Below the pieces are notes generated by a model that worked only from the letters and a program-made list of their open reading frames with translations, was not told where the DNA came from and ran no database searches. A stretch of DNA of 64,000 bases from Basidiobolus meristosporus CBS 931.73 (taxonomy: Eukaryota; Fungi; Basidiobolomycota). The stretch covers positions 15,758 through 79,757 of the forward strand of contig MCFE01000411.1 in assembly GCA_002104905.1 (NCBI GenBank), given 5' to 3'. The position numbers were made by a program, and so were the translations under genes. This document shows positions 1 through 34,498 of this stretch, piece after piece. The first letter of the stretch is position 1; each line of letters starts with the position of its first letter.

Positions 1-479
1 TATATACATTTTTCTTGACCTGTTGGGCCACAGGAATGAATACGGAGGGGGGAAGAGCCATGTAGAAGACCCGGTTGGTGTTCTTCCTCTCGCCGGCAAG
101 CTCCTCGAGGTATTGGTTCAGCTTCTGGAACGAGGCGTCCTCGTCATACTGACCGCTGATGTAATGGAGATGCTCCAAAAAGCCGTCGACCAGGTTGCGC
201 TCACTGGGGATGAACTTCAGGTAGGAGGCGATACGCTTCTTGAACTCGTCAAGCTCAAGATGGGAGCGAGCGTAGCCGACGATGTGGGTGTCTCTGGAGA
301 GGAACCGGTTTCTGTAAAGGCCGAACAGGGCAGGGTAGGTCTTCTTTTTGGCCAAGTCTCCGGAGGCTCCGAATACTACAAGGACAAAGGAAAGTCAATA
401 TGCGGTCCCCACCAGGGAAGAAGTATCGATAAGGCTACCCACCCACAATCACTGTGCTCTCTTGCGTAAGGTTGGTCAT
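1..479 (-). CDS. G6PD: Glucose-6-phosphate 1-dehydrogenase, 5' part (exon 479-443, intron 442-376, exon 375-<1; continues beyond the window start)
   Basis: Manual splicing of the minus strand gives [50 protein letters not shown]...NRVFYMALPPSVFIPVAQQVKKNVY. This contains the G6PD NADP-binding motif [10 protein letters not shown], plus GYARS and FYMALPP. The phase-1 intron rebuilds the codon G|TA (Val). Confidence 0.97.
376..442 (-). other. 67-nt spliceosomal intron of G6PD
   Basis: Minus strand begins GTGGGT, has a branch-like ATTGAC and a pyrimidine tract, and ends TTGTAG. Removing it restores the G6PD frame. Confidence 0.92.
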
Positions 480-2847: not shown

Positions 2848-5800
2848 TGTTGTAAGAGTCTTGGATATATTGGAAGTGATTGGGAGAACAAGTAGATTAT
2901 GTGGTTTTCACTTAATGATTTATTGAATGTAAAAGTGGTATTTATACTTTTACCCGGTCTTGGCATAAAAAACACGTAGAATAGGTTAAGAAAGGTCCCA
3001 AGAACATGTGTGCAAAGTTTGGGGCTGTTTGGACAACTTTGAGAATTTTGATGTTCTGGTTTCCTGGTATTTTGGTGAAAATATTCTAAGTAAATCCCAA
3101 CAAGGAATTTGGTCAGTATTCTCTAGGATTTGAAGGTAATGATCTAAGTGACTAAGTTAGGTGAATATTTAGGTGGAATTACAAATTTTTACTACACTCC
3201 CACTCAGCTAAATGTTCATACTGACTAGTCCTAATTCTGACCTAAGATATTCAAACTTGTCTCTAGCTAATGGTTTGGTAAATATGTCTGCAATCATTTC
3301 ATCTGTAGGACAGTAAACTAAGCTAACTAAGTTATTTTCTATAGCTTCACGTATGAAATGATGTCTAATATCTATGTGCTTGGTTCTAGCATGAAAAGTT
3401 GGATTTCTACCTAATTGTATACATCCTTGATTATATTGAAATAAAGCAATAGGCATTTTTTGACATAGGCCTAAATCTGTAAAAGGCTTTCTTAACCACA
3501 TTGCTTTTTTTTGTAGCTTCACAGGCTGCCATATACTCTGCCTCTGTGGTAGAAAGTACTACAGTTGGTTGCTTTCTTGAATTCCATGAAATTGCTCCTT
3601 TACAGTAAAGAAAGGTGTATCCTGTGGTGGATCTTCTGTCTTCTAAATTCTGTCCCCAATCAGCATCAGAGTATCCCACAAGATCCTGTTCTGAATCCTT
3701 ATAAGTGTATCTTAGGCTGATATCAGCAGTTCCTTTTAGGTATCTAAAAATCCGCTTAACTGCTGCAATATGATCAAATCCACTGTTCTGATTATGTTGG
3801 CTGACAACTCCCACCAAATATGAGATATCTGGACATGTTCCAAGCATGATATACAGCAGACTGCTGGCCATAGATTACTAAGGAAAGTCAGGGCTTTCAG
3901 ATGGCACCAAGCTCTCTTGATTTGGTTGTGTTTTGATCAAGTTAAGGTTTGTCTCCATTGGGGTAGCTGCTGGTTTACAGTCTTCCATTTTTTACTTCTT
4001 TAGTATATCTTGAATATACTTGGATTGGCTTGGGATGATAGTCTGGGTACATCTGTCTATGGACAACTTAATCCCTAAGTAGTAACTGAGTTCTCCTATA
4101 TTGAACATCTTGAACTCCTTAGATAGGCTGGATTTAGTCTCTTCCAATGTTTCTAGGTTATTGGCAGCTATAATAAGATCTTCCACATATAGAGCTAATA
4201 GAACTGGATTTGCTATCTTCTGGCTTATAGTATATACTATAGTCAGCATTACTCCTTTGGAAACTCAAAGATTCCAAATAAGAGTCTTTCTTGCAATTCC
4301 AGGCTCTAGGTGATTGTCTGAGACCATATAGTGACTTTTTAAGCTTGCAGACCAAATGGGGGTTATCTTGGTCACAAACCCGTCAGGCTGGTCCATATAC
4401 ATGTCCTCATCAAGTTCTCCATTCAAATATGCAGTTTTTATATCCATTTGATGAAGAGAAAACTTATATTTGGCTGCAATAACCAATATTAATATGATGG
4501 AATTAAACTTGGCTACAGGTGCAAAGGTCTCAGTATAGTCAGGTCCTTTTGTTTGAGAGTATCCTTTGGCTACAAGTCTTGCTTTGTATCTTTCAATTGT
4601 ACCATCAGCCTTGTATGTTGTCTTGAAGACCCATCTGCATCCAATTGATTTTTGGTTGATTGGTAATTTGACTAAGTCCCAAGTTTGATTTTCCATCAGG
4701 GCCATATATTCCTCAGTCATTGCAGATCTCCAAAACTTTGTCTGAGGGCTATTTAGGGCCTCTTTTACAGTCTGGGGCTTATCAATATGGACTGAATAGG
4801 CATAGGCTAAGTTTGTACCCTCATCAGTATAGTAATTTGGGCTATTTCTTGTCCAATTGGATCTCCTGGCATTTGATACTGGAATGATCTCTTCTGGGAT
4901 ATTCCTGGGCACTGATTCTGGCTGAACCATGGTTGCAGAGTCCTCTGGAGTGAAAAATTTTCATTGTTTTGCTCCAATTCAATCCTGACAATTGGTGGAC
5001 TTGAGATCAAATTTTTGTCATCATCTGATGTCATTTTTTGTGAATATTTTGAATTTTCATCAAACAACACATCCCTGGACTTGAACAGCTTCTTTGCTTT
5101 GGTATTGTAGAGTCTGTATGCCTTACTCTCATTGCAGTGGCCCAAAAATATGCATTTTACACTTTTTGGCTCAAATTTTGATTGATTTCTGGGCAGTTTC
5201 TTGGCATATGCTGTACACCCAAATATTTTAGATGTTCTGCACTTGGCCTGTATCCATGCCATGCTTCAAATGGAGTAGAGTCATGAAGTATTCTGTTATA
5301 ACTCCTGTTTTTCAGATATACAGCAGTGGCAACTGATTCCGCCCAAAAATCATAGGATAATTTTTGATCATGGATTATAGATCTTGCCATATCAATTATT
5401 GATCTGTTAGCATGTTCTGCTACTCCATTTTGCTGTGGGGAGTATGGTACAGTAGTCTCTTGCTTTATCCCATGAATTTTGCAAAAGTGGATGAAGAGTT
5501 TTGAGGTATATTCTACACCATTGTTAGAGTGTATTTTCTTGATTTTTTAACCAGTTTCTCTCTCCACCATGACTTTAAACTCCCTGAGCTTAGACAGAGC
5601 TTCTTCCTTTCTCTTCATGAAGTAGAACTATGTGTATCTTGTATAATTATCAACAAAAGTGATTAAATACTTCATCCCACCTAAGGATAAATTTTGCATG
5701 GGTCCACACACATCTGAGTGAATAACTACTTCTGGTACATAGAGTACTTCTTTAAAGGTCAGTGTATGACTTCCTTCACTGCATCTAAGGTTTACTTGGA

Positions 5801-7132
5801 GAGTTCCTTCTCCTACTGCATCAAGTGTTCTATTGTCACCCATGAAAACCTTCTTAATTGGAATTTCTTGATATTGGGTAAAAAGTTCTTTTTGGTGTGT
5901 AAAGTGTTGAGATGCTCCAGAGTCTATATGCCACATTTGAGAATCCTTGCTTGTGGTCATATTTAGTGAATAGTCTATCTTCAGTTGTTGCAGCATATCC
6001 ATATTCAGGCTTCTTTTGCTGATTATCTTTCTTTTTGAGACACCGGACTGATGTGTGTCCTTTCCTTTTGCAGTAGTTACAAAACAGGTTGCTGTTGCCT
6101 TTGTAGGGTCTTAGGTACCTCCTTTGTTGGTTATCATTGCTTCTTAAAGCATTTTCTTCTTCCTTCTTATTGGCACTTGATTTTCTTGATTCTTCATCAA
6201 GGAGCCTTCCATATACATAATTTAAGGTCAAATCTTCAGTTCTGGACACTAGTGCTGATACAAGGCCCTGAAACCTGTCTGTAAAGCTATTCAGGATGGT
6301 TACTATCACATCCTCATCAGCAGTTTGTATGCCCACAGATTCCATCTCATCTACCAGCAGGGTAATTCTGTTAAATAAATTTTTCATTTCTTCTCCTGGC
6401 AGAATCTTTGTAGTAAAGAATTTTGTCTCAGATACATTTGCTTAACAGCTGAGCATGACTGGTAGGTGTCTTCTAATGCCTTCCAGGCATTCTTTGTTGT
6501 TTTTGCTCTTGAGCATTGAATTAGCAATTTGTCCTTGACATTAAGGCAAATGTGGTTAAAGGCACTTTGTTCTTTCTTCTGGTACTTTAAGGCTTCCTAT
6601 CCCACGTTTTTAGGAGGGCATTCTTCTCCCATGACAATATCCCAAAGGCCTCTTTCTTGTAGCAGCATCTTCATCTTCACCTTCCACACTTGGTACTTAA
6701 ATCCATCCAACTTTTCGGCAGAGGGAAAATTCCAGTAACAGCAGTAGTAGACATTGCAGAGAGTGACAGCTCAGGGTTAATAACCTGTTGTAAGAGTCTT
6801 GGAGATATTGGAAGTGATTGGGAGAACAAGTAGATTATGTGATTTCACTTAATGATTTATTGAATGCAAAGTAGTATTTATACTTTTACCTGGTCTTGCC
6901 ATAAAAGATACTTAGAATAGGTTAAGAAAGGTCTCAAGAACATGTGTGCAAGGTTTGGGGCTGTTTGGACAAGTTTGAGAATTTTCATGTTCTGGGTACC
7001 TGGTGTTTTGGTGAAAATATTCAAAGTAAATCCTAACAAGGAATTTTGGTCAGTATTTTCTAGGATTTGAAGGTGATGATCTAAGTGACTAAGTTGGGTG
7101 AATATTTAGGTGGAAATACAAATTTATACAAC
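2848..7132 (-). mobile_element. Ty1/copia LTR retrotransposon copy A, degenerate, with an internal deletion between protease and integrase core
   Basis: LTRs at 2848-3196 and 6786-7132; PPT ctgagtgggag (3197-3207). Fragmented gag (CNYCKRKGH knuckle), PR (WHIDSGAS), IN, RT (HQMDIKTAYLNG) and RH (YSDADW, RTKHIDIRHHF) lie in copia order. The fusion LYVPE-VIHSDVCGP marks the deletion. Flanks (attac / acttt) do not form a TSD. Confidence 0.95.
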
Positions 7133-7865
7133 AGACTTGTTCCATTGGATAGTGCCACATTGAGCCATGAGTAGCAAATAATGCCATAGTGTGCCAGGGA
7201 GACCAAGTGAGCCTGTACTTGGCCACAGAGTATGAAACATAGCTCTCCATCTTCATGCAAAGCAGCCCCTGTGTTTGACCCATTGTACTGAAGAAAATCC
7301 ATTTTTTGACCTTTTTTTTGGATCAATGTTGTGCGGGATGTGGATGAGCACAGAAGGACTGAAGACATGAATCTGGTACTCAATACCCATGGCACTCTGA
7401 ATCTAGCTTCTGTGGCTTGTATCAAGTCACAAAAATGCATGGCACTATCTTGTTCCACTGGTACTATCAGGCACTGTATTTAAATATTAGCCCTAAAGTA
7501 AGACCTATATAAAGCACTTATAGTGCCAGATAGTACCAGTGGACCAAGATAGTGCCATACATTTTTGTGACATGATACAAGCCATAGGAGCTAGATTCAG
7601 AGTGCCATGGGTATTGAGTACCAGATGCATGTCTTCAGTCCTTCTGTGCTCTTTCACATCCTGCACAACATTGATCCAGAAAAAAAGGTCAAAAAATGGA
7701 TTTTCTCCAGCACAATGGGTGAAACACAAGGGGTGCTTTGCATGAAAATAAAGAATAATGCTTCACACTCTGTGGCCAATTTTAGGTCTGCTATGCCTTT
7801 CTGGCACTCAATGGCACTATTTGGCACTCATGGCTCAATGTGGCACTATCCAACAGAACAAGTCT
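7133..7865. mobile_element. 733-bp palindromic (foldback/MITE-like) element, copy 1
   Basis: Termini AGACTTGTTC...GAACAAGTCT; ~347-bp inverted arms around a ~38-bp spacer; TSD aac at 7130-7132 and 7866-7868. Confidence 0.9.
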
Positions 7866-7869
7866 AACA

Positions 7870-9295: not shown

Positions 9296-11740
9296 CTCAA
9301 TCCTGACAAATGGCAGACTTGAGATCAAATTTTTGTCATCATCTGATGTCATTTTTGGCAAAAATTTTGAATTTTCATCCAACAACACATCCATGGACTT
9401 GACCAGCTTCTTTGCTTTGGTATTGTAGAGTCCAAACATTCTTAGATATTCTGCACTTGGTCTGTATCTATACCATGCTTCAAATGGAATAGAATCACAA
9501 AGTATTCTGCTATAACTCCTATCTTTAAGGTATATAGCTGAGGTAACTGATTCCACCCAAAAATCATAGGATAATTTTTGATTATGGTTCATAAATCTTG
9601 CCATATCAATTGTTGATCTGTTTGCATGTTCTGCAACTACATTTTGCTGTGGGGAGTAAGGTACAGTAGTCTCTTGTTTTATCCCATGAATCTTGCAGAA
9701 GTGGATGAAGAGTTTTGAGGTATATTCTCCACCGTTGTCAGAGCGTATTTTCTTGATTTTTTAACCAGTTTCTCTCTCCACCATGGCTTCAAACTCCCTG
9801 AGCTTAGACAGAGCTTCTTTCTTTCTCTCCATGAGGTCAACCCATGTGTATCTTGTGTAATCTTCAATAAAAGTGACTAAATATTTCATCCCACCTAAGA
9901 ATAAATTTTGCGTAGGTCCACACAGATATGAGCGAATTAGATCTAATTTTTTCTTAGTTTTGTTTAGCCCAGAGCTCTTGAACAGTTGTCTGGCTTGCTT
10001 CCCATATATGCAGGCTTCACAGTGCTCCAAACTAGCTGGGGGATCAGTTTTTACTCCGGAAATTAACTGATCTCTGATCATTTTGAGCAAATAATCAAAA
10101 TTGATGTACCTAAGTTTCCTGTGCCAAGGCATTGGTGTTTCTTCATTTAAGTTAGTTATATTGGCTTCAAGAAATGATGGAATATAAGCTAACCTATACA
10201 CATTCTGCTCTCTGATATGTAAAGCAAAATGAGCACCATTTTGATCAGTGAACCTGCATGCAGAATTGTCAAAGCTGAAACTGTGTCCTTCTGCAGTGGC
10301 CTTGGTTACAGATAGTAGGTTTGTAGCTATTTCTTGTACATTAAGTACTTCTTTAAAAGGCAGTGTATGGCTTCTGTCATTGCTTCTAAGGTTTACTTGG
10401 ATAGTTCCTTCTCTCACTGCATCAAGTGTTCTATTGTCACCCATGAAAACCCTCTTAATTGGGATTTCTTGGTATTGGGTAAAAAGTTTGATTTGGTTTG
10501 TAAAGTGTTGAGATGCTCCAGAGTCAATATATCATGTCTGAGATTCCTTTTCTGTAGTTGTATTTAGCACAGATATGAATACTCTATCTTCAGTTGTTGC
10601 AATGTTTCCATATTCTGGCTTCTTTTGCTGATTATCACTCTTTTCAAGAAACTGGTCTTAAGTGTGTCCTTCCCTTATGCAGTCATTGCAAAGCAGGTTT
10701 CTGTTGCCTTTGTAGGATCTTAGGTACCTCCTTTGTTGGTCATTGCTGCTTATTAAAGCCTTTTGCACTTCCTTATAGGGGCTTGATTTTGTGAATTCTT
10801 CATCCTGGAGCTTTTCATATACATAATTTAAGGTCAAATCTTCAGTTCTGGACTCTAGGGCTGATACAAGGCCCTGAAACATGTCTATCGGGCTATTCAG
10901 GATGGTAACTATCACATCCTCATCAGTAGCTGGTACACCCACAGATCTTATCTCATCCACCAGCAAGGTATTTCTGTTAAATAAATTTTTCATTTCTTCT
11001 CCTGGCTGCATCCTTGTAGTAAAGAGTTTTGTCTCAGATACAGTTTCTTAGCAGCTGAAGATGACTGGTAGGTGTCTTTCAATGCCTTCCAGGCATTCTT
11101 TGCTGTTTTTGCTCTTGAGCATTGAATTATCAATTTGTCTTTGACATTAAGGCAAATGCAGTTAAAGGCACTTTGTACTTTCTTCTGGTACTTCAAGGAA
11201 TCCTCTCCCAAATTTTTCAGAGGGCATTCTTTTACAATGACAATATCCTAAAGACCTCTTTCTTGCAGCAGCATCTTCATCTTCACCTTCCACACTTGGT
11301 ACTTAAGTCCATCCAACTTTTCAGCAGAGGGAAAATTCCAGTAATGGCAGTGGTAGACATTGCTGATAATGACAGCCTGGGGCTCATAGCATGTTGTAAG
11401 AGTCTTGGAGTTATTGGAAGTGACTGGAAGGACAAGTAGATTATGTGGCTTTCACTTAATAGTTTATTATATGTAAAAGTGATATGCATATTTTTACATA
11501 GTCTTGTCATAAAAAATACAAAAAATAGGTTAAGAAAGATTCCAAGAACATGTGTGCAAAGTTTGGGGCTGTTTGGACAACCTTGAGAATTTTCATGTTC
11601 TGGGTACGTGGTATTTTGGTGAAAATATTCTAAGTAAATCCTGACAAGGAATTTGGTCAGTATTCCCTAGGATTTGAAGGTAATGATCTAAGTGACTAAA
11701 TTAGATGAATAATAAGGTGGAATTACAAATTTTCATAACA
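9296..11740 (-). mobile_element. Copia 5' half (5' LTR 11392-11740, gag, PR, IN), truncated
   Basis: LTR with degenerate PBS (gggctcatagca on +). ORF fragments homologous to gag, PR, GAG-pre-integrase (CEACIYGKQ) and IN. Confidence 0.9.
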
Positions 11741-12933: not shown

Positions 12934-15900
12934 TGTTGTAAGAGTCTTGGAGATATTGGAAGTGATTTGGAGAACAAGTAGATTATGTGGTTTTCACTTA
13001 ATGATTTATTGAATGCAAAGTAGTATTTATACTTTTACCAGGTCTTGGCATTACAAACACGTAGAATAGGTTAAGGAAGGTCCCAAGAACATGTGTGCAA
13101 AGTTTGGGGCTGTTTGGACAACTTTGAGAATTTTCATGTTCTGGGTACCTGGTATTTTGGTGAAAATATTCTAAGTAAATCCCAACAAGGAATTTGGTCA
13201 GTATTCTCTAGGATTTGAAGGTGATGATCCAAGTGACTAAGTTAGGTGAATATTTAGGTGGAAATACAAGTTTTTACAACACTCCCACTCAGCTAAATGT
13301 TCATACTGACTAGTCCTAATTTTGACCTAAGATATTCAAACTTGTCTCTAGCTAATGGTTTGGTAAATATGTCTGCAATCAATTCATCTGTATGACAGTA
13401 AACTAAGCTAACTAAGTTATTCTCTATAGCTTCTTGTATGAAATGATGTCTAATATCTATGTGCTTGGTTCTAGCATGAAAAGTTGGATTTCTACCTAAT
13501 TGTATACATCCTTGATTATCTTGAAATAAAGTAATAGGCGTTTTTCAACATAGGCCTAAATCTGTAAAGAGCTTTCTTAACCACATTGCTTCTTTTGTAG
13601 CTTCACTGGCTGCTATATACTCTGCCTCTGTAGTGGAAAGTGCTACGGTTGGTTGCTTTCTTGAATTCCATGAAATGGCTCCTTTACAGTAAAGAAAGGT
13701 GTATCCTGTGCTGGATCTTCTGTCTTCTAAATTTCGTCCCCAATCAGCACCAGAGTATCCTACAAGATCCTGTTCTGAATCCTTATTAGTGTATCTTAAG
13801 CAGATATCAGCAGTTCCTTTTAGGTATCTAAAAATCTGCTTAACTGCTGCAATATGATCAGATCCATAATTCTGATTATGTTGGCTGACAACTCCCACTG
13901 AATATGAGATATCTGGACGTGTTCCAAGCATTATATACATCAGACTGCCGACCATAGATTGATAAGGAAAGTCAGGGCTTTCAGATGGCACCAAGCTCTC
14001 TTGATTTGGTTGAGTTTTGACCAAGTTAAGGTTTGTCTCCATTGGGGTAGCTGCTGGTTTACAGTCTTCCATTTTGTACTTCTTTAGTATATCTTAAATA
14101 TACTTGGATTGGCTTAGGGTAATAGTCTGGGTACTTCTGTCTATGGAGAACTTAATCCCTAAGTAGTAACTAAGTTCTCCTAAATCAGACATCTTGAACT
14201 CCTTAGATAGGCTGGATTTAGTCTCTTCCAATGTTTCTAGGTTATTGGCGGCTATAATAAGATCATCCACATATAGAGCTAATAGAACTGGATTTGCTCT
14301 ATCTGGCTTATAATATATACTATAGTCAGCATTACTTCTTTTGAAACTCAAGGATTCCAAATAAGAATCTATCTTGCAATTCCAGGCTCTTGGTGATTGT
14401 TTGAGACCATATAGTGACTTTTTAAGCTTGCAGACCAAATGGGCGTTATCTTGGTCAACAAACCCATCAGGCTGGTCCATATACACGTCCTCATCAAGTT
14501 CTCCATTCAAAAATGCAGTTTTTACATCCATTTGATGAATAAAAAACTTATATTTGGCTGCAATAGCCAATATTAATCTGATGGAATTAAACTTGGCTAC
14601 CGGTGCAAAGGTCTCAGTATAGTCAAGTCCTTTTGTTTGAGAGTATCCTTTGGCCACAAGTCTTGCTTTGTATCTTTCAATTGTACCATCAGCCTTGTAT
14701 TTTGTCTTGAAGACCCATCTGCATCCAATTGATTTTCGGTTGATTGGTAATTTGACTAAGTCCCAAGTTCAATTATCCATCAGTGCCTGATATTCCTCAG
14801 ACATTGCAGATCTCCAAAACTTTGTCTGAGGGCTATTAAGGGCCTCTTTTACAGTCTGGGGTTCATCAATATGGACTGAATAGGCATAGGCTAAGTTTGT
14901 ACCCTCATTGATATAGTAATTTGGGCTATTTCTTGTCCGATTGGATCTCCGGGCATTTGATACTGGAATGATCACTTCTGGGATATTCCTGGGCACTGAT
15001 TCTGGCTGAACCACGGTTATAGAGTCCTCTGGAGTGAAGAAATTTTCATTGTTTTGCTCTGATTCAATCCTGACAATTGGTGGACTTGAGATCAAATTTT
15101 CGTCATCATCTGATGTCATTTTTTGTGAAAATTTTAAATTTTCATCAAACAACACATCCCTGGACTTGATCAGCTTCTTTGCCTCTGTATTGTAGAGTCT
15201 GTATGCCTTACTCTCATTGCAGTAGCCCATAAATATGCATTTCTCACTTTTTGGCTCAAATTTTCACTGATTTTGGCCGGTTTTTTGGCATATGCTGTAC
15301 ACCCAAATATTCTTAGATGTTCTGCACTTGGTCTGTATCCATACCATGCCTCAAATGGAGTAGAATCACGAAGTATTCTGTTATAACTCTTATTTTCAAG
15401 GTATACAGCACTGGCAACTGATTCCGCCCAAAAATCATAGGATAATTTTTGATCATAGATCTTGCCATATCAATTATTGATCTGTTAGCTTGTTTTGCTA
15501 CTCCATTTTGCTGTGGGGAGTATGGTACAGTAATCTCTTGCTTTATCCCATGCATTTTGCAGAAGTGGATGAAGAGTTTTGAGGTATATTCTCCACCATT
15601 GTCAGAGCATATTTTCTTGATTTTTTCACCAGTTTCTCTCTCCACCATGGCTTTAAACTCCCGGAGCTTAGACAGAGCTTCTTCCTTTCTCTCCATGAAG
15701 TAGACCCATGTGTATCTTGTATAATCTTCAATAAAAGTGATTAAATACTTCATCCCGCCTAAGGATAAATTTTGCATAGGTCCACACAGATCTGAGTGAA
15801 TTAGATCTAATTTTTTCTTAGTTTTGATTAGCCCAGAGCTCTTGAACGGTTGTCTGGCTTGTTTCCCATATATGCAGGCTTTTCAGTGCTCCAAATTAGC

Positions 15901-17606
15901 TGGGGGATCAATTTTCACTCCAGAAATTAGCTGATCTTTGGTCATTTTGCGCAAATAATCAAAATTGATGTGTCCAAATCTCCTGTGCCAAAGCATTGGT
16001 GTTTCTTCATTTAAGTTACTTAAATTGGCTTCCAGATATGATGGAATATAAGTCAACTTGTATAGATTCTGATCTCTGATGCCCAAAGCAATATGGGCAC
16101 CATTTTGATCAGTGATCCTGCATCCAGAATTGTCAAAACTGAAACCGAGTCCTTCTGCTGTGGCCTTGCTTACAGAGAGTAGGTTCTTGGCTATTTCTGG
16201 CACATAGAGTACTTTTTTAAAGGTCATTGTATGGCTGCCTTCACTGCTTCTAAGGTTTACTTGGATAGTTCCTTCTCCCACTGCATCAAGTGTTCTATTG
16301 TCACATATGAAAACCTTCTTAATTGGAATTTCTTGATATTTGGTAAGAAGTTCTTTTTGGTTTGTAAAGTGTTGAGAAGCTCCAGAGTCAATATACCACG
16401 TCTGAGAATCCTTGTTTGTGGTCATATTTAGTGCAGATATGAATAGTCTATCTTCAGTTGTTACAGTATTTCCATATTCAGGCTTCTTTTGCTGTTAATC
16501 TCTCTTTTTGAAACACCGGTCTGATGTGTGTCCTTTCCTCTTGCAGTAGTTGCAAAATAGGTTGCTGTTGCCTTTGTAGGGTCTTGGGTACCTCCTTAGT
16601 TGGTTATCATTGCTTATTAATGCATTTTCTTCTTCCTTCTTATTGGTACTTGATTTTCTTAATTCTTCATCCAGGAGCCTTCCATGTACGTAATTTAAGG
16701 TCATATCTTCAGTTCTGGACTCTAGGGCTGATACAAGGCCCTGAAACTTGTCTTTCAGGCTATTCAGGATGGTAACTATCACCTCCTCATCAGTAGTTGG
16801 TACACCCACAGATTCCATCTCATCTACCAGCAGGGTAATTCTGTTAATTAGATTTTTCATTTCTTCTCCTGGCAGCATCTTTGTAGTAAAGAATTTTTGT
16901 CTCAGATACATTTTCTTGGCAGCTGAACATGACTGGTAGGTGTATTCCAATGCTTTCCAGGCATTTTTTGCCTTTTTGCTCTTGAGCATTGAATTAGCAA
17001 TTTGTCCTTGACATTAAGGCAAATGCAGTTAAAGGCACTTTGTTCTTTCTTCTGGTACTTTAAGGCTTCCTCTCCCACATTTTTAGGAGGGCATTCTTCT
17101 CCCATGACAATATCCCAACGGCCTCTTTCTTGTAGCAGCATCTTCATCTCACCTTCCACACTTGGTAGTTAGATCCATCCAACTTTTCAGCAGAGGGAAA
17201 AATTCCAGTAATAGCAGTAGTAGACATTGCAGAGAGTGACAGCTCGGGGCTCATAACCTGTTGTAAGAGTCTTGGAGATATCGGAAGTGATTTGGAGAAC
17301 AAGTAGATTATGTGGTTTTCACTTAATGATTTATTGAATGCAAAGTAGTATTTATACTTTTACCAGGTCTTGGCATTACAAACACGTAGAATAGGTTAAG
17401 GAAGGTCCCAAGAACATGTGTGCAAAGTTTGGGGCTGTTTGGACAACTTTGAGAATTTTCATGTTCTGGGTACCTGGTATTTAGGTGAAAATATTCTAAG
17501 TAAATCCCAACAAGGAATTTGGTCAGTATTCTCTAGGATTTGAAGGTGATGATCCAAGTGACTAAGTTAGGTGAATATTTAGGTGGAAATACAAATTTTT
17601 ACACCA
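12934..17606 (-). mobile_element. Full-length copia copy B (4673 bp), the youngest copia here, coding region broken
   Basis: LTRs 12934-13281 and 17259-17606 with 4 differences by eye; TSD AAATC (12929-12933, 17607-17611); PBS 17247-17258; PPT 13282-13292. All gag-PR-IN-RT-RH motifs are present but split over at least 7 ORF fragments. Confidence 0.97.
17247..17258 (-). promoter_or_regulatory. Primer-binding site GGTTATGAGCCC, complementary to the tRNAiMet anticodon arm
   Basis: Directly abuts the 5' LTR. Exact reverse complement of GGGCUCAUAACC in fungal initiator tRNA-Met. Confidence 0.9.
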
Positions 17607-18181
17607 AAATCAAGCGTCAATAAGAAGGAAGAAGAAAATGCTTTAATAAGCAATGATAACTAATAAAGAGATACCCTTGACCTTTTAAAGGCAATTGCAA
17701 CCTGTTTTGCAACTACTGCAAATGAAATGGACACACATCTCACCAGGGCCTGAAAAAGAGAGATAGCCAGCAGAGAAGCCAGAATATAGAAATGCTGAAA
17801 CAACTGATGATAAACTATTCATATCTGCACTAAATATAACCACAAAAAATGATTCTCAGATGTGGTAACTTGACTCTGGGGCATCTCAACACTTTCCCTA
17901 TGAGAAGTTATTGTGATGGTCCCATCAAAAGGCCTTCACAATTTCAAAGTCAGGTGACTAAGAGGTACTGGTCCCATCATGACACCATGTAGAGGCCATT
18001 AAAAATAATTGCACCCCAGATTTCACAAAAACTTGGCCCAAATTTTTCATTTCAACAATATTTTAGTAGGTTTTGATTGGTTCCCTGCCAATTTGTTCAC
18101 TTTCTGATCCTGGACATTCAATCACCTCCTATGTTTGTGTACAGTGAGTGGTTATTGTCTCTTTTTCATACTTGTTACTTC

Positions 18182-19000
18182 TGTTGTAAGAGTCTTGGAG
18201 ATATTGGAGTAATTGGGAGGACATGTAGATAATGTGGTTTTTACTTCATGATTTATTGAATGTAAAAGTAGTATTTATACTTTTACATGGTCTTGGCATT
18301 AAAAACACATAGAATAGGTTTAGGAAGGTCCCAGGAACATGTGCGCAAAGTTTGGAGCTGTTTGGACAACTTTTAGAATTTTCATGTTCTGGGTACCTGA
18401 TATATTGGTGAAAATATTCTAAGTAAATCCTGACAAGGAATTTAGTCAGTATTCCCTAGGATTTGAAGGTAACAATCCAAGCAACTAAGTCAAGTGAATA
18501 TATAGGTGGAATTACAAATTTTTACAACACTCCCACTCAGCTAGATGTTCATACTGGCTAGTACTAATTTTGACCTAAGATATTCAAACTTGTCTCTAGC
18601 TAATGGTTTGGTAAATGTGACTGCAATCATTTCATCTGAAGGACAGTATACTAAGATAGCTAAGTTACTCTCTATAGCTTCACATATGAAATGATGTCTA
18701 ATTTCTATGTGCTCAGCTTTAGCATGAAAAGTTGGATTTCTACCTAATTGTATGCATCCTTGATTATCTTGAAATAAAGTAATAGGTGTTTTTAGACATA
18801 GGCCTAAATCTGTAAAAAGCTTTCTTAACCACATTGCTTCTTTGATAGCTTCACAGGCTGCCATATACTCTGCCTCTGTGGTAGAAAGTGTTATGGTTGG
18901 TTGTCTTCTTGAATTCCATGAAATTACTCCTTTACAGTAAAGAAAGGTGTATCCTGTGGTGGATCTTCTGTCTTCCAAATATTGTCCCCAATCAGCATCT
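18182..19000 (-). mobile_element. Copia 3' fragment D (RNase H, PPT, 3' LTR 18182-18529)
   Basis: ORF 18541-18978 encodes copia RH; ctgagtgggag PPT at 18530-18540. Confidence 0.9.
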
Positions 19001-20573
19001 GAGCTCTTGACATTGTAGCCTTGTCTGTCAGTGGGACCTCAACTATGTCAACAATGGAGGATGCAGAGGCTGTGGTAGACAAATTGCCTTTCTCTGCAAA
19101 CTCATCTACCTTGGTGGAGTGTAGCTCAACAGCCTGAGCTTCCAACTCTGGTGGAAATAGCTGTTTTCTTGCTGGTAATTCTTCTTGGCCATGATGAGAT
19201 TCAGCCTGTTCCAGGATTACAGCATTCATTGGCAATAGCTGCAGTTTTTTTTGTATGCTTCCCTGTCTCAGGCTTGAGTAGACACTTTTCCCTTTACCTT
19301 CTCCTTTATCACTGCCAGGTCTTTCACTTCTACTTTTTCTGAGTGCTTCTTGTAAGGAATTATATTTTCTCTTTGCTAAATTCTGCTCAAACGCAGCTGT
19401 TTTGTCCTACTTGTCCCTTGCTGGCACTGTCCTTGCAACTTGACATTTCTTTACCACTTGTTTTGAGCCCTCAGCTGTAGTTGTAATAGGCTCATGAGAA
19501 AGCCACTTGTCCCTTAATGGCACTCTTCCAGCTACCTGGCATCTCCTTGATGCTTGCTTGGAGCTTTTGGCCCTGCTTGTATAAGGCTCTTGAGGAAGCT
19601 GCTGGTTTTTAGCCATAGCACCCTTGTACTGCTGCCTTTGATAGTTTCTGCTAATCTTGAGATACTTTGTTAGCATACCAATACTGGCCCAAAATCTGTT
19701 TGCTTACTTGAATCCAGGATAATGCTCATGGAGCAAGTCAGCAGCTTTCTGCTGGGCCTTGAGTTCCTTATGATCCCATGGTATACTGGCCTTACGGTGT
19801 TGGCATGCTAGACTTCTAATGGCCTCTTGGATATTTGCCACCTCTTCATCACTGCAATCAACAGCTTCACATATGTTCAATGTCTTTTGATTTATAGGCT
19901 TTGGTATAAACACTACATTTTCTCCCTGCTATGTTGTGATAGATTTTCTATAGGCTTTATGTTTGAGCAGTGTTGTTGTGCTTGAAAGACTGTACAGTGG
20001 TTGTCTGCTATTACAGTGCAAAATGGCACAATTCTTGGCTGTAGCATTGAGCTACTTGAGTTCCTTCTTTGCAGCAAAGATACTGCTTTCTCTACCTGGG
20101 ATATAGATTGATCTATACCTTTTATCCACTCATCCTGTTTCTGAACTCTTTCTTGACTTCTCTGGGCCATTGCATCTATCCTATTAGCTACAGTGCCTGA
20201 TTACCTCTTTAATGCTTTGGCATGAGCTGACAACAGACTTGCTAATATGAGTGGTGGCAATGTTATGACAGCCACTTAATGGTCTGCAACTGAAGGTACT
20301 GCTGTTGCTACATTCTCATCTGCCTCAGTACTGTGGCCAGCTTGCAGCTCTGCAGAGATTTTCAATTGACTGAGAGCCTGCAGTGTCTGCATTATTACAA
20401 TCAATGGACACACTGTCCACAGGGCCTTCTTTGGTTGTAGCCCCACTTGTTGCACTGAATCTCAAAGCAAGCTTTTGTCTAACTGTTCTTCTGCTCCTAT
20501 CAGTAGTGAGGTTTGGTTGGGAACCCAACAACTTTGTCTTATTTTTGGCCACATATATACAGAAGTGAGTCAA
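19000..20573 (-). pseudogene. Decayed CACTA accessory ORF of unknown function, divergent from the transposase
   Basis: Track ORFs 20325-20573, 19913-20170, 19704-19913 and 19407-19676 line up with homologous fragments at 37588-38903, which indicates one frameshifted gene. Confidence 0.6.
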
Positions 20574-20776
20574 ACTAAAGGAGAGATGGTGTTACATAAA
20601 CATGTGTAAGTGGTGCCACAACATTATTTATGATGCTTACTATGACAGGTCATTGTTAAATCTTACATTTATGTAGGTGCAATGACTTAAATAGAAGAAT
20701 GCCTTGGATTCACCTGAGTATTGACAAAAAAATGATCTAAAAGTGTTATGTTGCTGAGTGTCAAACTGTTTGCCAT

Positions 20777-23700
20777 ATGGAAAAGACTACTTTGATGCAA
20801 CGCCATAAGAGAAGAGAAAAAAGTCCATGTGGTAATTGTAGCCAGCCTCTCAGTCATGAAAAACATATACAGTATAGGAAGTATTACAGGGATCTTGGCC
20901 AGTGTTTTGCCGCTCAAGTCATATTTGACCACTTGCCAGTGACTACTGCACCAACATCATCTTGCCAGCCACTTGATACCTCTATAATGACATCTGGCCA
21001 TACTTGTCACCATGTGCAAACTGAGTCAGGTGAGTTTGTGACACCTCTAGGCTTGCCCCAGCTTTCTGAATATTGCATACAGAGTGACAGACCTGAAGCA
21101 GCAGGCTCATGGATAGATTGTGAGCTTTTCTCCCTAACAACAGTATCCGGCATTAGCTTGACAAAATCCCATTATGCAATGAGATAATACAAATGGAAAA
21201 AAATGCTAAGGATGATTTATGGAGTCAAGCAAGGACAGTATTCATCTACTGGTGAACAATGTGATGTTGTGGCTAGAGAAGTAGCTCATTTCCACTAATA
21301 TCAGTAGTAGGGGCTTTGGGGTTCCACTACTACTTCTTGCCAAAATCATCCGGGGATGCAACTTGCCATGTACATGGTATGAATCAACAACCATCATGTG
21401 GCTGGCAACATATGACCCAGAGACTGTTGTGATACCTGTTGTAAAGATTTGTATTTCCACCTGAATATTCACTTAATTTAGTCACTTGAATCATTACCTT
21501 CAAATCCTAGAGAATACTGACCAAATTCCTTGTCAGGATTTACTTAGAATATTTTCACCAAAATACCAGGTACCCAGAACATGAAAATTCTCAAGGTTGT
21601 CCAAACAGCTCCAATCTTTGCAAGCATCTTTTTGGGACCTTCCTAGACCTATTCTATGTGTTTGTAATGCCAAGACCGTGTCAAAGTATAAATACTACTT
21701 TTACATTCAATAAATCATTAAGTGAAAACTCATAATCTACTTAAGATATGCAAGAGGGAGCCTTAAAGTACCAGAAGAAAGAACAAAGTGCCTTTAACTG
21801 CATTTGCCTTAATGTTAAAGACAAATTGCTAATTCAATGCTCAAGAGCAAAAATGGCAAAGAAAGCCTGGAAGGCATTAGAAGACACCTACCAGTCATGT
21901 TCAGCTGCTAAGAAAATGTATCTGAGACAAAAATGTTTTACTACAAAGATGTAGCCAGGAGAAGAAATGAAAAATCTAATTCACAGAATTACCCTGCTGG
22001 TGGATGAAACAGAATCTGTGGGTGTACCAGCTACTAATGCAGATGTGATGGTTACCATCCTGAATAGCCTGACAGACAAGTTTCAGGGCCTTATATCAGC
22101 CCTAGGGTCCAGAACTGAAGATTTAACCTTAATTTATGTATTTGGAAGGCTCCTGGATAAAGAATTAAGAAAATCAAGCACCAAAAAGAAGGAAGAAGAA
22201 AATGCTTTAATAAGCAATGTTAACCAACAAAGGAGGTACCCAAGACCCTACAAAGATAGCAGCAACCTGTTTTGCAACTACTGCAAAGGTAAGGACACAC
22301 ATCAGACCAGTGTCTCAAAAAGAGAGATAGTCAGCTGAAAAAGCCTTAATATTGAAATGCTGCAACAACTGAAGATAAAATATTCATATCTGCACTAAAT
22401 ATGACCACAAACAAGGATTCTCAGACGTGGTATATTGACTCTGGAGCATATCAACACTTTACACACCAAAAGAACTTTTTACCCAATACCAAGAAATTCC
22501 AATTAAGAAGGTTTTCTGGGTGACAATAGAACACTTGATGCAGTGGGAGAAGGAACTATCCAAGTAAATCTTCAAACAGTGAAGGAAGCCATACACTGAC
22601 TTTTAAAGAAGTACTCTATGTACCAGAAATAGCCAAGAACCTAATATCTTTAAGCAAGGCCACTGGAGAAGGACTTAATTTCAGCTTTGATAATTCTGGA
22701 TGCAAGATCACTGATCAAAATGGTGCCCATACTGCTATGGGTATCAGAGATCAGAGTCTATATAAGTTAGCTTATATTCCATCATATTTGGAAGCCAATA
22801 TTAGTAACTTGAATGAAGAAACACCAATGCTTTGGCACAGAAGATTTGGACACATCAATTTTGATTATTAGCGCAAAAAGAACAAAGATCAGCTAATTTC
22901 TGGAGTAAATTTGATCCCCCAGCTAATTTGGTGCACTGTGAAGCCTGCATATATGGGAAACAAGCTGGACAACTGTTCAAGAGCTCTGGGCTAATCAAAA
23001 CTAAGAAAAAATTAGATCTAGTTCACTCAGATCCGTGTGGACCAATGGAAAAATTATCCTAAGGTGGGATGAAGTATTTAATCACTTTTATTGATGATTA
23101 TACAAGATACACGTGGGTCTACTTCATGGAGAGAAAGGAAGAAGCTCTGTCTAATTTGAGGGAGCTCAAAGCCATGGTGGAGAGAGAAACTGGTGAAAAA
23201 ATCAAGTAAATATGCTGTGACAATGGTGGACAATATACCTCAAAACTCTTCATCCACTTCTGCAAAATTCATGGGATAAAGCAAGAGACTATTGTACCAT
23301 ACTCCTCACAGCAAAATGGAGTAGCAGAATGTGCTAACAGATCAATAATTGATATGGCAAGATCTGTGATCCATGATCAAGAATTTTCCTATGATTTTTG
23401 GGTGGAATTGGTTGCCACTGCTGTATATCTTGAAAATAAGAGTTATAACAGAATACTTTGTGATTCTACTCCATGTGAAGCACAGTATAGATACAGACCA
23501 AGTGCAGAACATCTAAGAGTATTTGGGTGTACAGCATATGCCAAGAAACTGCCCAGAAATCAGTCAAAATTTAAACCAAAAAGTGTGAAATGCATATTTT
23601 TGGGCTACTGCAATGAGAGTAAGGCATACAGACTCTACAATACCAAAGCTAAGAAGCTAATCAAGTCCAGGGACGTATTGTTTGATGAAAGTTTAAATTT

Positions 23701-26700
23701 TCACAAAAAATGACATCAGATGATGACAAAAATTGTATCTCAAGTCCACCAATTGCCAGGGTTGAATCAGAGCAAAACAATGAAAATTTTTCACTCCAGA
23801 GGACTCTAAAACCATGGTTCACCCTGAATCAGTGCCCAAGAATATCCCAGAAGCAATCATTCCAGTATTAAATGCCCAGAGATCCAATTGGAAAAGATAT
23901 AACCCATATTACTATATCAATGAGGGTACAAACTTAGCCTATGCATATTGAGTCCATATTGATGAGCCCCAGACTGTAAAAGAGGCCCTAAATAGACCTC
24001 AGACAAATTTTTGGAGATTTTCAATGACTGAGGAATATCATGCCCCAATGGGAAGTCAGACTTGGGACTTAGTCAAATTACCAATCAATCAAAAATCAAT
24101 TGGATGCAGATGGGTCTTCCAGACAAAATACAAGGCTGATAGTACAATTGAACAATATAAAGCAAGACTTGTGGCCAAAGGATACTCTCAAACAAAAGGA
24201 CTTGACTATACTGAGAACTTTGCACTGGTAGCCAAGTTTGATTCCATCAGATTAATATTGGCTACTGCAGCCAAATGTATTTTTTTATTCATCAAATGGA
24301 TGTAAAGACTGCATTTTTGAATGGAGAACTTGATGAGGATGTGTATATGGACCAGCCTGATGGGTTTATTGACCAAGATAACCCCTTTTGGTCTGCAAGC
24401 TTAAGGAGTCACTATATGGTCTCAAACAATCACCAAGAGCTTGGAATTGCAAGATAGATTCTTATCTGGAATCTTTGAGTTTCAAAAGGAGTAATGCTGA
24501 CTATAGTATATACTATAAGCCAGATAGAGCAAATCCAGTTCTATCAGCTCTATGTGTGGATGATCTTATTATAGCCACCACTAACCTAAAAGCATTGGAA
24601 GAGACTAAATCCTGCCAATCTAAGGAGTTCAAGATGTCTGATCTAGGAGAACTCAATTACTACTTATGGATTAAGTTCTGCATAGACAGAAGTACCCAGA
24701 CTATTACCACAAGTCAATCCAAGAATATTCAAGATATACTAAAGAAGTACAAAGTGGAAGACTTTAAACCAGCAGCTACCCCAATGGAGACAAATCTTGA
24801 CTTGGTCAGAACTCAACCAAATCAAGTGAGCTTGGTGCCATCTGAGAGCCCTGACTTTCCTTATCAATCTATGGAGGGCAGTTTGATGTATATCATGCTT
24901 GGAACATGTACAGATATCTCATATTCATTTGAGTTGTCAGCCAACATAATCAGAACTATGAATCGGATCATATTGTAGCAGTTAAGCAGATTTTTAGATA
25001 CCTAAAAGAAATTGCTGACTTTGGCTCAAGATATACTTATAAGGATTCAGAACTGGATCTTGTGGCATACTCTGATACTAATTGGGGACAAAATTTGGAA
25101 GACAGAAGATCCACCACAGGTTACACCTCTCTTTACTGTCAAGGAGCAATTTCATGGAATTCAAGAAAGCAACCAACCATAACACTTACTACTACTGAGG
25201 CAGAGTATATCGCAGCCTGCAAAACTACCAAAAAAGAAATGTGGTTAAGAAAAATTTTTAGAGATCTAGGCCTATGCCTAAAAACACCTATTACTTTATT
25301 TCAAGATAATCAAGGATGTATACAATTAGGTAGAAATCCAACTTTTCATGCTAAAGCTGAGCACATAGAAATTAGACATCATCTCATATGTGAAGCTATT
25401 GAGAATAACTTAGTTAGCTTAGTATACTGTCCTTCAGATGAAATGATTGCAGTCACACTTACCAAACCATTAGCTAGTGACAAGCTTGAATATTTTAGGT
25501 CAAAATTAGGACTAGCCTGTATGAACATTTAGCTGAGTGGGAGTGTTGTAAAAATTTGTAATCCTGCCTAAATATTCTCTTAACTTAGCCACTTGGATTG
25601 TTACCCTCAAATCTTAGGAAATATTGACCACATTCCTTGTCAGGATTTACTTAGACTATTTTCACCAATATACCAGGTACCCAGAACATGAACATTCTAA
25701 AAGTTGTCCTGACAGCTCCAAACTTTGCACACATGTTCCTGGGACCTTCCTAAACATATTCTATGTGTTTGTAATGCCAAGACCATGTAAAAGTATAAAT
25801 ACTACTCTTACATTCAATAAATCATGAAGTGAAAACCACATAATTTACTTGTTCTCCCAAATCACTTCCAATATCTTCAAGACTCTTACAACAATACCAG
25901 CATGTATTAGCAGCTGCTTGGGATTCACATCAGAAAATGCCACAATTGCAAGGTGCCCAACTTGTCAGGAATCTACTACCATTGGGGGGAAACATTGTAC
26001 ACACCCCATATATGTTCTAGTTATGCCCTGTCTAAAGAAGCTCATACTGCTCAACAAATAATGTGAAGCTATAGAGTCTCACACTCAGTATCAATCAAGC
26101 ATAAATACATCCAATATATTTGATGGCAAACATTACAAACAGCCAAGAAGCAAGGGCTATTTTCAAGGTATGCATGACCATGCCTTTACCTTGAGAGTTG
26201 ATGGAATCTTATTAAACAAGTGCATTGCCAGCAAATCCTGCTAGCCATTGATTCTCATCAACCTGAATCTGCCACCTATCTTACAGTATGAGAGCAGAAT
26301 TCTGATGGTAGGCTCACTGGTATCTGGGCCTAAATCACCATCCAACCTGGATAGCTATCTGTATCCATTGCTGGATGAATTTTGTATGCTTTCCAGCTGG
26401 ATAATGGTGAATAGGTGTCATGTCAAAGCGCATATCACTATCTGCATTGGAAAAACACCAGCCCTCAGCAGGTTAGCTAGCCTTTCTGGGAACAATGGAT
26501 GGTATTGCTGTTAAAAATGTGTGAGATCCAGAGGATTTACTCTATAACACACACACATTATTATTACCCAAACACAAACACTAATAAAATCATCTTCCCA
26601 CACATAGAACAAGCAGAAGTAAACATGCAATTGCAGCAAAGTTGGCAAGCTATAAGCCATTGGCCAGAATATGGAATTAATTAGAAGCCAGAGATACCTA

Positions 26701-28000
26701 AAATAGAGGGTATCTGTTAGAGCAAAGCTTTTCACTGGGAGCAATGCTTTTGCTTTTCAACAATATCCCTATACTGATGACCAAGTTGTACATGGGGCAT
26801 TCCACGCTAAGTGGCCCTTTGAGATACCAGAGAGATTTTAAAGAATTGGCAAGACATTACAGAGTATCTGCTACCCCAAGCACTTTAACATGTAGATTTC
26901 TGCTGCTACTATGTCCATTCTTTACTCCTTCTTGTTTGGGGCACCGGGAGTATTGGGCCTTGCTTCACCTTTTGGGAGTCTCCTATGGAGTAGATATGTG
27001 GGGAGATAGGAAAACAAATCAAGTTGCAGGTACTATCATATCCCAATCGCATCAAGAATATCACCTTCAACTCCCTCATGGATGCAATGAGTTGGCACAT
27101 GAAGGTCGACCAGGAAGAGTTGGAAAATACTGAGGACAGATGTGCAAATGGAGACAGCCATGCTTAGGGCATTAAGAAGCTAAGTAGCTTCAAAGCATTT
27201 GTAATCAGTTAAGTAATGCAAAGCTGAATTAGGTGCAACAAGCAACTGATTATTATTAGGCAAACTCCACCAAAGTATGCCAGGTTTCTCTTGGTCACAA
27301 GCCAATTTCAACACCATTGAATATGGAAATCACACAAACAAGAGCCAGAGTGCAACTAGAAGAGGGACTAGAATTCAGCAAGGAGAAGAAATATATACTG
27401 GCTAAATACCAAAAACCTCTTTGCAGATATTCAGGAGATATTCATGGCAGAGGTGGCTTCAACCAAGCATATGTTTGCAGGATGTTTATGTTACTAGCAA
27501 TACAAGGTATATGGCAACTTTGCAAGTATCACACTAAAAAGCCATAAAGTTAAAGCAAAAGAGGTATGTCAATTATGGCAGGTGTGCTTGTTAGTAGAGG
27601 CTAGTAAGCAGGAGGTCATAGTATTTTTTGATTTGAGCTATATGTGGATTATGCAAGGTAGTAGTGAGTAAGCAAATAAAGTGGTGTGATCCCACCATGC
27701 AATATATGAAATGCATAGGGGGATGTAGAAAAAGGAAATACCATTTGGTAAATTGCTATGGTAGCATTGTTCAGAATTGACTGTAGGCTGCTATATTGCC
27801 ATGACAATACCATTAGAGGCTTGCAATGAGGCTATCAAAACACCATCATGTTTTTTGCCTTTTGAGGTAATCGGATGTACTGGGTATTAGATCCACTCAG
27901 ATAGTTGCAGAATGCACCAAGACTGCAACAATGCCCTGTCATCCCTGGCAAAACACTGCCCAAACTCTGTTAAGTTTTTTAACTTTGCTAGGCAGTAAAA
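20777..28000 (+). pseudogene. CACTA/EnSpm (tnp2-type) transposase pseudogene, split by copia E
   Basis: N-terminal CGNC..H motif; then PAC...C...F..ENATIARCPTC; then LILINLNLPP...GPKSPSNLDSYLYPLLDE...CIGKTPA...GWYCC, the Transposase_21/tnp2-type core. The 3' end of the ORF is approximate. Confidence 0.82.
21437..25893 (+). mobile_element. Copia copy E, near full length; a deletion removes the 5' LTR end, PBS and gag start
   Basis: LTRs 21437-~21742 (truncated) and 25544-25893; PPT 25533-25543; TSD ATACC (21432-21436, 25894-25898); gag-PR-IN-RT-RH fragments. Confidence 0.95.
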
Positions 28001-29279
28001 TTAGCCAAATGCCATTATGATTCTATCTTGAGATTGTGTAATAGGCCATCAATTCCAAGCAGGTGGTAATATAGCAAACTCCTGATGGGATCCTGACAGC
28101 TGATCTGGAGTGGATCCACCTACATGACCAAATTATTTTTCATAGGGAGCAACTGCAGTTATGGTGACTGAGAGTATAAATATCTGTGGGATAATATTCA
28201 TAAGTGCATGGAGGTTTGCATAAATTGACAATAGCAATATTACTCTGAAGTAGGTGTGAGAAGCTTGAAAGAAAATGAGCATTAAGTAATGGATTACCAT
28301 CACTAACTGCAGCATGACTCATTTGCTTTGAAATCTATCACAGAGGTGTAGCACCAATATATAGGGTGAATACCAGAACTTGTCTTGGCAGGCTTTGAGT
28401 GCTCAAGCCTTAAGTGTTACTTATAAATAATATTTTTCAAGTAGCTCAGTCAGTTATTCCTGATTTCCTTTGGCTTCTTCCAATATGTAAACATGTGGAT
28501 TGTTTACTGCTGAGAACATCTTGTAAAGCAGTTGAATGTGATGGTATTGAACAAAAAAGTATAGCATCCAAGAGAAAAGAGTCATAATCTGTGGAATAGC
28601 TCAACTGCACCAAAGGGACAATTAAGTGCAGATTCTTAGTACTGTCAGAGAGTGGCAGATATACTAGCAGAGAGATTCTGTTCTACTATTGGTCTTGTAT
28701 ATGGCTGGTCTAGGCTATAAAGGCAACAGAGTGGGCCTACTTTGCAGGCTAGGCATGATGTTTGTGGGAGTGCTAGACCTGCTAGACTTTTGCATAAACT
28801 AGAATGAAATTGCTGGATTCTTTTTTTGCTATGACCCAGTCCTAACTTTGTTGAGACACACACCTGACCAAAAGGTTCAGTAGGCTTTGTTTATACTTTA
28901 TGATCAATAAGCTTTAGTAAGAGCCTAGAGACTTTATTCCTTTAAATCAATTAGGGAGCTGATAGGTGAGTAAGATGAGTGAATGTGCATCATCAATCAG
29001 GGGATGTGTTTACAACTACTTAGTGGTTGAATGGATCTCAGATTACCAATCACCTGGAAAGACTTGGTAGATGAGTTGATGGCATAATGGCCACATGAAA
29101 AATGATGAAGTGTGAAAGTGCAAGATAGATTCTAAGATGGGGTAAATATACCATAGGTGTTTTAATGATGTTTAGGTTTAGAAAATTCAGTTCAGGTAAT
29201 AAAATTTCAATTGAAATCAAATTAGCTATTTTTTAAGCTCTGATGCACAACAATAGGTTCCTGAGGAAGGCACAGGCTT

Positions 29280-33317: not shown

Positions 33318-34498
33318 TATATTAGTAGTGCATGGGAGGTAGAAAAGGAAATATCATTTGGTAAATTGGTATGGGAGCATTATTAATAACTAGCTGTAGG
33401 CTGCCATGCTGCTACAATAATGACATCAGAGGTTTGCAATGAGGCCATCAAGACACCAGCAGGTTTTTTGCCATATAAGGCAATTACATGTACTGGCCAG
33501 TTAGATCTACCCAAATAGTTGTAGCATGCACTAAGACCACAATAATGCCATGCCACCCTGGCAAAACACTGTTTAAACACTGTTATGTTTTTAACTTTAT
33601 TTGGCAGTAAAATTGGCCAAATTCTATTGTCATCCTCTCATAAGATTATACTTGTTCCATTGGATAGTGCCACATTGCGCCATGAGTGCCAAATGATGCC
33701 ATAGTGTGCCAGGCTGAGCCTAAGTGAACCCATATTTGGTCACAGAGTGTGACACATAGTTCTTCTTCTTCATGCAAAGCCACCCTGGTGTTTCACCCAT
33801 TATGCTGGAGAAAATCCATCTTTTGACCTTTTTTTTGGATCAAAGTTGTGCAGGATGTGTAAAAGCTCTACAGGATTGAAGACATGCATCTGGTGCTCAA
33901 TACCCATGGCACTGTGAATCTAGCTCCTGTGGCTTGTATCATGTCACAAAAATGAATGGCACTATCTTGGTCCACTGATACAATCTGGCTTTATACTTAA
34001 ATATCAGCTCTGAAGTAAAACCTTTACAAAGCACTTATAGTGCCAGATAGTACCAGTGGAACAAGATAGTGCCAAGCATTTTTGAGACATAATACAAGCA
34101 ACTGGAGCTAGGTTCAGAGTGCCATGGGTTTTGCATACCAGATGCATGTCTTCAGTTCTTCCCTGCTCTTACACAACATGCACAATGTTGATGCAAAAAT
34201 AGGTTAAATAATTGATTTTCTCCAGCAAAATGGGTGAAACACAGGGGTTGCTTTGTACAAAGATGAAGAGCTATATTTGAGACTCTATGGCCAGGTTTTG
34301 GTCTGCTATTCCTCTCTGGCACACAATGGCACTATTTATCACTCACAGCTCAAAGTGACATTCTCCAACAGAACAAGTCTATTGCGTAAACCCTATAAAA
34401 GAAAGTTCCAAGATGCTGCATAATAATTGTCTCCTGATAAGATCTTGCCAGCTGCTCTATGTAGGATCCACTTGCAGGACCAAGTTATTCTTAATAAG
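33318..34498 (+). mobile_element. CACTA 3'/right-end fragment, host of palindrome copy 3
   Basis: Homologous to 27700-28147 on both sides of the palindrome insertion. Confidence 0.6.
33648..34380. mobile_element. Palindromic element, copy 3 (733 bp, more diverged)
   Basis: ATACTTGTTC...GAACAAGTCT termini; TSD att at 33645-33647 and 34381-34383. Confidence 0.88.

Follow-up and report, generated by a model that had tools for sequence, protein, structure and literature searches.

Introduction

Transposons of the PIF/Harbinger-ISL2EU-Spy (PHIS) superfamily were divided by Han et al. (2015) into groups according to their target sequences (PMC4482050). One of these groups, Pangu, is defined by 3-bp duplications of the form 5'-ANT-3' and by inverted repeats that usually start with AG or GG; it includes elements from fungi, and most of its autonomous members carry two ORFs (PMC4482050). 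The inverted repeats of described Pangu families are 11-40 bp long, and among canonical PIF/Harbinger families inverted repeats of up to 1042 bp have been recorded (PMC4482050). The group is the one that Repbase lists as Harbinger2 (Kojima 2025, PMC12730594). Huge expansions of PIF-Harbinger and CMC-EnSpm elements have been reported from Basidiobolus (Muszewska et al. 2017, PMC5751038).

Here we analysed a stretch of Basidiobolus DNA of 64,000 nt, which in its full length is referred to as the window, and compared a palindromic repeat within it with these systems. The results identify the repeat as a non-autonomous cut-and-paste transposon of the foldback type (MITE-like, with long inverted repeats) and make it quite probable that a Pangu/Harbinger2-type element supplies its transposase.

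Results

Nested transposons occupy nearly the whole window

The window is eukaryotic DNA and consists almost entirely of nested transposons (Table 1). Its sole host-gene signal, a G6PD frame, sits at the left edge in the only GC-rich stretch (52%). Retroelements are represented by an abundant copia family with at least ten LTR-bearing copies, whose LTR sequence is TGTTGTAAG...TTACAACA, and by a young gypsy element, whose LTR sequence is TGTTACAAG...CATAACA. The window also contains a repeat unit of ~5 kb that carries a tnp2 relic and is present in at least four decayed copies with 67-80% mutual identity, every one of which has been interrupted by a copia, gypsy or foldback element. This content fits the PIF-Harbinger and CMC-EnSpm expansions reported from Basidiobolus. 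In addition, two LTR-like repeats of 1074 bp lie 8 kb apart in inverted orientation, with pieces of the tnp2-type repeat and the gypsy element between them; this arrangement may reflect an inversion or two head-to-head insertions.

CpG dinucleotides are strongly depleted, with an observed/expected ratio of 0.13 in the window vs 0.00-0.03 in the foldbacks, which hold 0-1 CpG each (one in copy 1). The depletion is accompanied by a TpG/CpA excess of ~1.6, a combination that is consistent with methylation-driven CpG decay in repeats.

Table 1. Coordinates of the foldback copies, their parts and target sites, and of other features of the window.
Feature	Position	Strand	Details
Host-gene exon, G6PD N-terminal NAD-binding domain	2-394	-	PF00479, E = 4.5e-34
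Copia family	2875-7133, plus about ten other LTR copies		320-bp LTRs, element ~4.3-4.65 kb
Copia LTR examples	11419-11732, 12960-13280, 17285-17603, 18208-18528, 58148-58468, 62475-62795
Foldback copy 1	7133-7865	+	733 bp; left arm 7133-7479, loop 7480-7518, right arm 7519-7865
Duplication AAC, copy 1	7130-7132 / 7866-7868		exact
GTGCCA subterminal cluster	7152-7197	+	arm positions 20, 39, 49, 59; ~10-bp phase
Foldback copy 2	29611-30344	-	734 bp; arms 29611-29957 and 29998-30344, loop 29958-29997
Duplication ATA, copy 2	29608-29610 / 30345-30347		exact
Empty paralogous sites, copy 2	19735-19747 (+) and 38193-38198		collinear without the element and one triplet
Foldback copy 3	33648-34380	+	733 bp; arms 33648-33994 and 34034-34380, loop 33995-34033
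Duplication ATT, copy 3	33645-33647 / 34381-34383		exact
Empty paralogues, copy 3	~28035, 34520, 35441
Arm segment 1-36	arm positions 1-36		arm-to-arm match 34/36 (almost complete) in copies 1 and 2, 26/36 in copy 3
Arm segment 37-125	arm positions 37-125		arm-to-arm identity 72% in copy 1, 67% in copy 3
Arm segment 126-347	arm positions 126-347		arm-to-arm identity 92% in copy 1, 81% in copy 3
tnp2-type repeat copies (approximate)	17899-21436 + 25893-27150, 37607-43581, 29247-30942, 46678-49017 + 53929-54201
tnp2 relic, Transposase_21 (CMC-EnSpm-type)	40150-40491	+	PF02992, E = 3e-12
LTR-like repeats, TG...CA	45603-46676 and 54745-55818	inverted	1074 bp each, 98% identical
Young gypsy element	49008-53927	-	371-bp LTRs 97.3% identical, 4-bp duplication CTCC
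Gypsy pol	49386-52892		intact 1168-aa protease-RT-RNaseH-integrase frame

Three palindromic copies share one architecture and encode no protein

BLASTN with copy 1 (7133-7865) as the query returned exactly three full-length copies, the same three of 733-734 bp that a first-pass annotation had listed, and no additional copy or fragment elsewhere in the 64,000-nt window. The inverted arms around a short spacer described there were likewise recovered, and all three copies have the architecture 347 + 39/40 + 347 bp (inverted arms and loop). Copy-to-copy identity ranges from 84 to 94%: copy 2, which lies in the reverse orientation, is 93.9% identical to copy 1 (97% outside positions 37-125), and copy 3, the oldest, is 84.4% identical to copy 1. 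Within single copies, arm-to-arm identity decreases from 97% (copy 2) through 87% (copy 1) to 76% (copy 3). The arms contain scattered GTGCCA motifs but otherwise consist of unique sequence with no tandem array.

The palindromes are predicted to fold very stably, with -317 kcal/mol for single-stranded DNA of copy 1 (z = -32 vs shuffles) and RNA minimum free energies of -403 to -655 kcal/mol for the foldbacks; the earlier estimate that a transcript would form a hairpin of ~350 bp is arithmetically correct. No Rfam family was matched in the whole window. Eight open frames lying within copies 1 and 2 were compared with Pfam and none matched; they arise as by-products of the palindromic structure, and the foldback encodes no protein. 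With a length of 733-734 bp, non-coding sequence, inverted ends, target duplications and dispersed similar copies, the repeat belongs to the foldback/MITE-like structural class.

Uninterrupted paralogues demonstrate insertion at all three sites

Each copy is flanked by its own exact 3-bp duplication (AAC, ATA and ATT), as had been annotated, and three exact 3-bp repeats at boundaries set by the inverted ends have a probability of ~(1/64)^3 by chance. The window is so highly repetitive that every insertion site also has uninterrupted paralogues, with which the sequence before insertion could be compared. The target of copy 1 lies within the terminal 4 bp of a copia LTR. Removal of copy 1 together with one AAC restores an LTR end reading ...TACAACA, the form present at eight further copies of the LTR, and unique flanking sequence follows beyond. 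A check of the 5-bp copia flanks on the AAC of copy 1 showed that they are unmatched (ATTAC vs ACTTT), which suggests recombination between copia copies. Copy 2 is flanked on both sides by an old tnp2-type repeat, and two paralogous stretches of this repeat are collinear with the site only when the element and one triplet are taken out, the gaps then agreeing exactly (11 bp vs 11 bp and 4 bp vs 4 bp). For copy 3, AAGATTG reads across the site in 3/3 empty paralogues.

The clean rejoining of host sequence claimed in the first-pass annotation is therefore borne out at 3/3 sites, and insertion with a 3-bp duplication is demonstrated directly by the uninterrupted paralogues. The element has thus moved at least three times, in each case into a repeat older than itself (a copia LTR for copy 1, the tnp2-type transposon for copy 2 and a third repeat for copy 3). 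Outside the converted tract described below, 97% of positions agree between copies 1 and 2 (626/645), which makes these two much younger than their hosts.

These comparisons also bear on whether the palindromes might be immobile and have arisen by segmental duplication, or by local inverted duplication through replication or repair errors, a reading to which the abundance of duplicated, nested repeats in the window lends some colour. However, the three copies have mutually unrelated flanks, homology ends exactly at the inverted ends, and a separate 3-bp duplication accompanies each insertion. Immobility is refuted by the uninterrupted paralogues at 3/3 sites, and we attach practically no credence to it. 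Lack of coding capacity, dispersal, duplications and empty sites together uphold the annotation of a non-autonomous foldback element.

The two arms differed before the family spread, and copy 2 carries a conversion tract

The arms fall into three segments that differ in conservation (Table 1). In positions 37-125, copies 1 and 3 have left arms that are 81% alike, vs 71-73% when these are set against either right arm and 67-73% over all other arm comparisons that involve the two copies. The two arm types thus differ alike in copies 1 and 3, and this asymmetry is older than the spread of the family. In copy 2, right-type sequence has replaced that of the left-type arm between positions ~37 and ~250, and the two arms of this copy are 100% identical in positions 37-125. 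Copy 2 nevertheless keeps the side-specific CCATTGG/CTGTTGG near its tips and side-specific variants in its innermost 80 bp, which identifies the event as an internal conversion tract and not as the replacement of a whole arm.

The palindrome itself probably goes back to a single event, in which one transposon end was duplicated in inverted orientation, and was amplified thereafter. Occasional later conversion from arm to arm within a molecule would be a by-product of the inverted repeat.

The termini are confined to the foldback and are followed by phased GTGCCA motifs

The element is bounded by AGACTTGTTC...GAACAAGTCT. When the 26-nt terminus AGACTTGTTCYRTTGGATAGTGCCAC was searched with up to three mismatches, it occurred six times in the window, at precisely the six foldback ends, with 0 occurrences expected by chance. 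AGACTTGTTC is present at 5/6 ends and ATACTTGTTC at 1/6, the left end of copy 3 having mutated to ATACTTG, one mismatch from AGACTTG.

GTGCCA is enriched about 30-fold in the foldback, with 10-13 occurrences per element vs 0.38 per 733 bp in the remaining window, and TAGTGCCA occurs 5-7 times per element vs 0 times elsewhere in the window. A subterminal GTGCCA cluster, spaced at about one helical turn, is present in every copy and mirrored at the opposite end, and extra GTGCCA motifs in the opposite orientation lie at arm positions ~258 and ~308. Such an arrangement is typical of subterminal sites bound by a transposase or by its DNA-binding partner, and these motifs, as candidate sites of this kind, probably bind protein.

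The 26-nt terminus had 0 matches in metagenome contigs and GTDB genome contigs. A conserved 20-mer gave three matches in metagenome contigs of 53-56% GC (Ga0335073_10164570, Ga0335075_10000046 and Ga0335072_10140858), which come from related samples and match the same arm stretch over 23-24 bp only; as no homology extends past these 23-24 bp, they were rejected as relatives and attributed to chance or to an unrelated conserved gene segment. A literature search on fungal foldback/Harbinger MITEs returned nothing specific.

Termini and duplications point to a Pangu/Harbinger2-type transposase

We propose that a DDE transposase from an autonomous element whose ends match those of the foldback would recognise the AGACTTGTTC terminus in trans, and that this transposase or a partner protein would bind the phased subterminal GTGCCA motifs. 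The foldback would then be excised, and would integrate anew at a staggered cut of 3 bp starting with A. The likeliest supplier would be a two-gene element of the Pangu/Harbinger2 type within the PHIS superfamily.

Consistent with the statement in the first-pass annotation that a mobilising transposase is not identifiable here, we found no autonomous element with foldback ends in the window, and no DDE domain of the PHIS/PIF-Harbinger type in a Pfam search of its 74 open frames of at least 75 aa outside retroelements, a set defined by setting aside 79 frames in the copia/gypsy zones and frames shorter than 75 aa. The Pfam matches among the 74 frames were the tnp2 relic, pieces of retroelements and G6PD. 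The putative link between derivative and parent is drawn from the terminus and the type of duplication.

CMC/EnSpm elements also make 3-bp duplications, a feature that the foldback shares with them, and the foldback might alternatively be a non-autonomous derivative of a CACTA, tnp2-type element that was mobilised by a CMC/EnSpm transposase. PF02992 is the sole trace of a DNA transposase among the frames searched, the repeat with this relic is also the one into which copy 2 has inserted, and huge expansions of CMC-EnSpm elements have been reported from Basidiobolus genomes (PMC5751038). However, the foldback ends in AGACTTG, not in CACTA or CAC, and the boundary common to three copies of the relic-carrying repeat (43581, 8383 and 17899) is unrelated in sequence to AGACTTGTTC, which does not occur in the window beyond the foldback ends. 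Furthermore, the copies of the relic-carrying repeat, at 67-80% identity, are much older than foldback copies 1 and 2 (97%), and the foldback interrupts this repeat without sharing its ends. We regard a CMC/EnSpm origin as very unlikely.

The first-pass annotation had also implied that no known family with 3-bp duplications has such termini and targets. This did not stand, as Pangu has AG or GG ends and ANT duplications (PMC4482050); the annotation had considered only canonical PIF/Harbinger (TWA) and CACTA elements. As for the Pangu target, only ATT conforms strictly to ANT (1/3), AAC and ATA share just the first A, and three sites are too few for a consensus. Later mutation is unlikely to account for AAC and ATA, since both flanking copies of each triplet agree. 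That 2/3 duplications misfit ANT, that the window shows no transposase with matching ends and that none of the papers listed in a literature search on the terminus has it in a transposon context would all accord with mobilisation by another or an undescribed superfamily with 3-bp duplications, be it Zator- or Academ-like or unknown. Against this, the definition of Pangu already covers AG ends combined with a 3-bp duplication that starts with A, and we consider such an origin unlikely. On the preferred assignment to a Pangu/Harbinger2-type supplier, we regard the foldback as a novel family of an already known type, an ordinary non-autonomous PHIS-like derivative.

Discussion

The foldback is a clean, textbook-quality derivative with empty sites in the window for each of its copies, and is of little import alone. 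If the assignment is correct, the Pangu/Harbinger2 group gains a long-armed non-autonomous family, which aids repeat annotation of the genome, and the family offers a handy substrate for studies of arm-to-arm conversion and CpG decay. It is also conceivable, if improbable, that the target rule is looser than ANT, as AAC and ATA might indicate, and that read-through transcription of the near-perfect 350-bp hairpins from promoters nearby could provide a constant source of dsRNA able to silence the ends of the parent transposon, by analogy with Mu killer, in a CpG-stripping genome.

Several known systems resemble the foldback in part. With Drosophila FB it shares long inverted arms that make up nearly all of the element, and exchange between these arms. 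In FB the arms consist of short sequences repeated in tandem, and the duplications measure 9 bp; in contrast, the arms of the foldback are unique sequence and its duplications are 3 bp long. CACTA/CMC-EnSpm elements have in common with it the 3-bp duplication and subterminal repeats, and the window contains a relic of this superfamily, but the foldback ends in AGACTTG and not in CACTA, CAC or CCC, and the repeat that carries the relic ends differently.

Tourist-like MITEs and canonical PIF/Harbinger elements are alike in small size, lack of coding sequence and 3-bp duplications, and also in mobilisation in trans, which for the foldback is inferred. The inverted repeats of the foldback are far longer than those of Tourist MITEs, and, unlike in canonical PIF/Harbinger, the TWA target (TAA/TTA) is found in 0/3 copies (AAC, ATA, ATT). 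A parallel to the subterminal GTGCCA motifs may exist in the reconstructed Harbinger3_DR, in which a Myb-like partner protein has reportedly been shown to bind subterminal repeats.

From Pangu/Harbinger2 the foldback differs in its arms, which measure 347 bp vs 11-40 bp in Pangu, and in AAC and ATA, which break the ANT rule. Compared by the published definition, however, it agrees with this group in its AG ends and in a 3-bp duplication that starts with A in 3/3 copies, and it shares with it the occurrence in fungi and, as in all PHIS groups, a proneness to non-autonomous derivatives.
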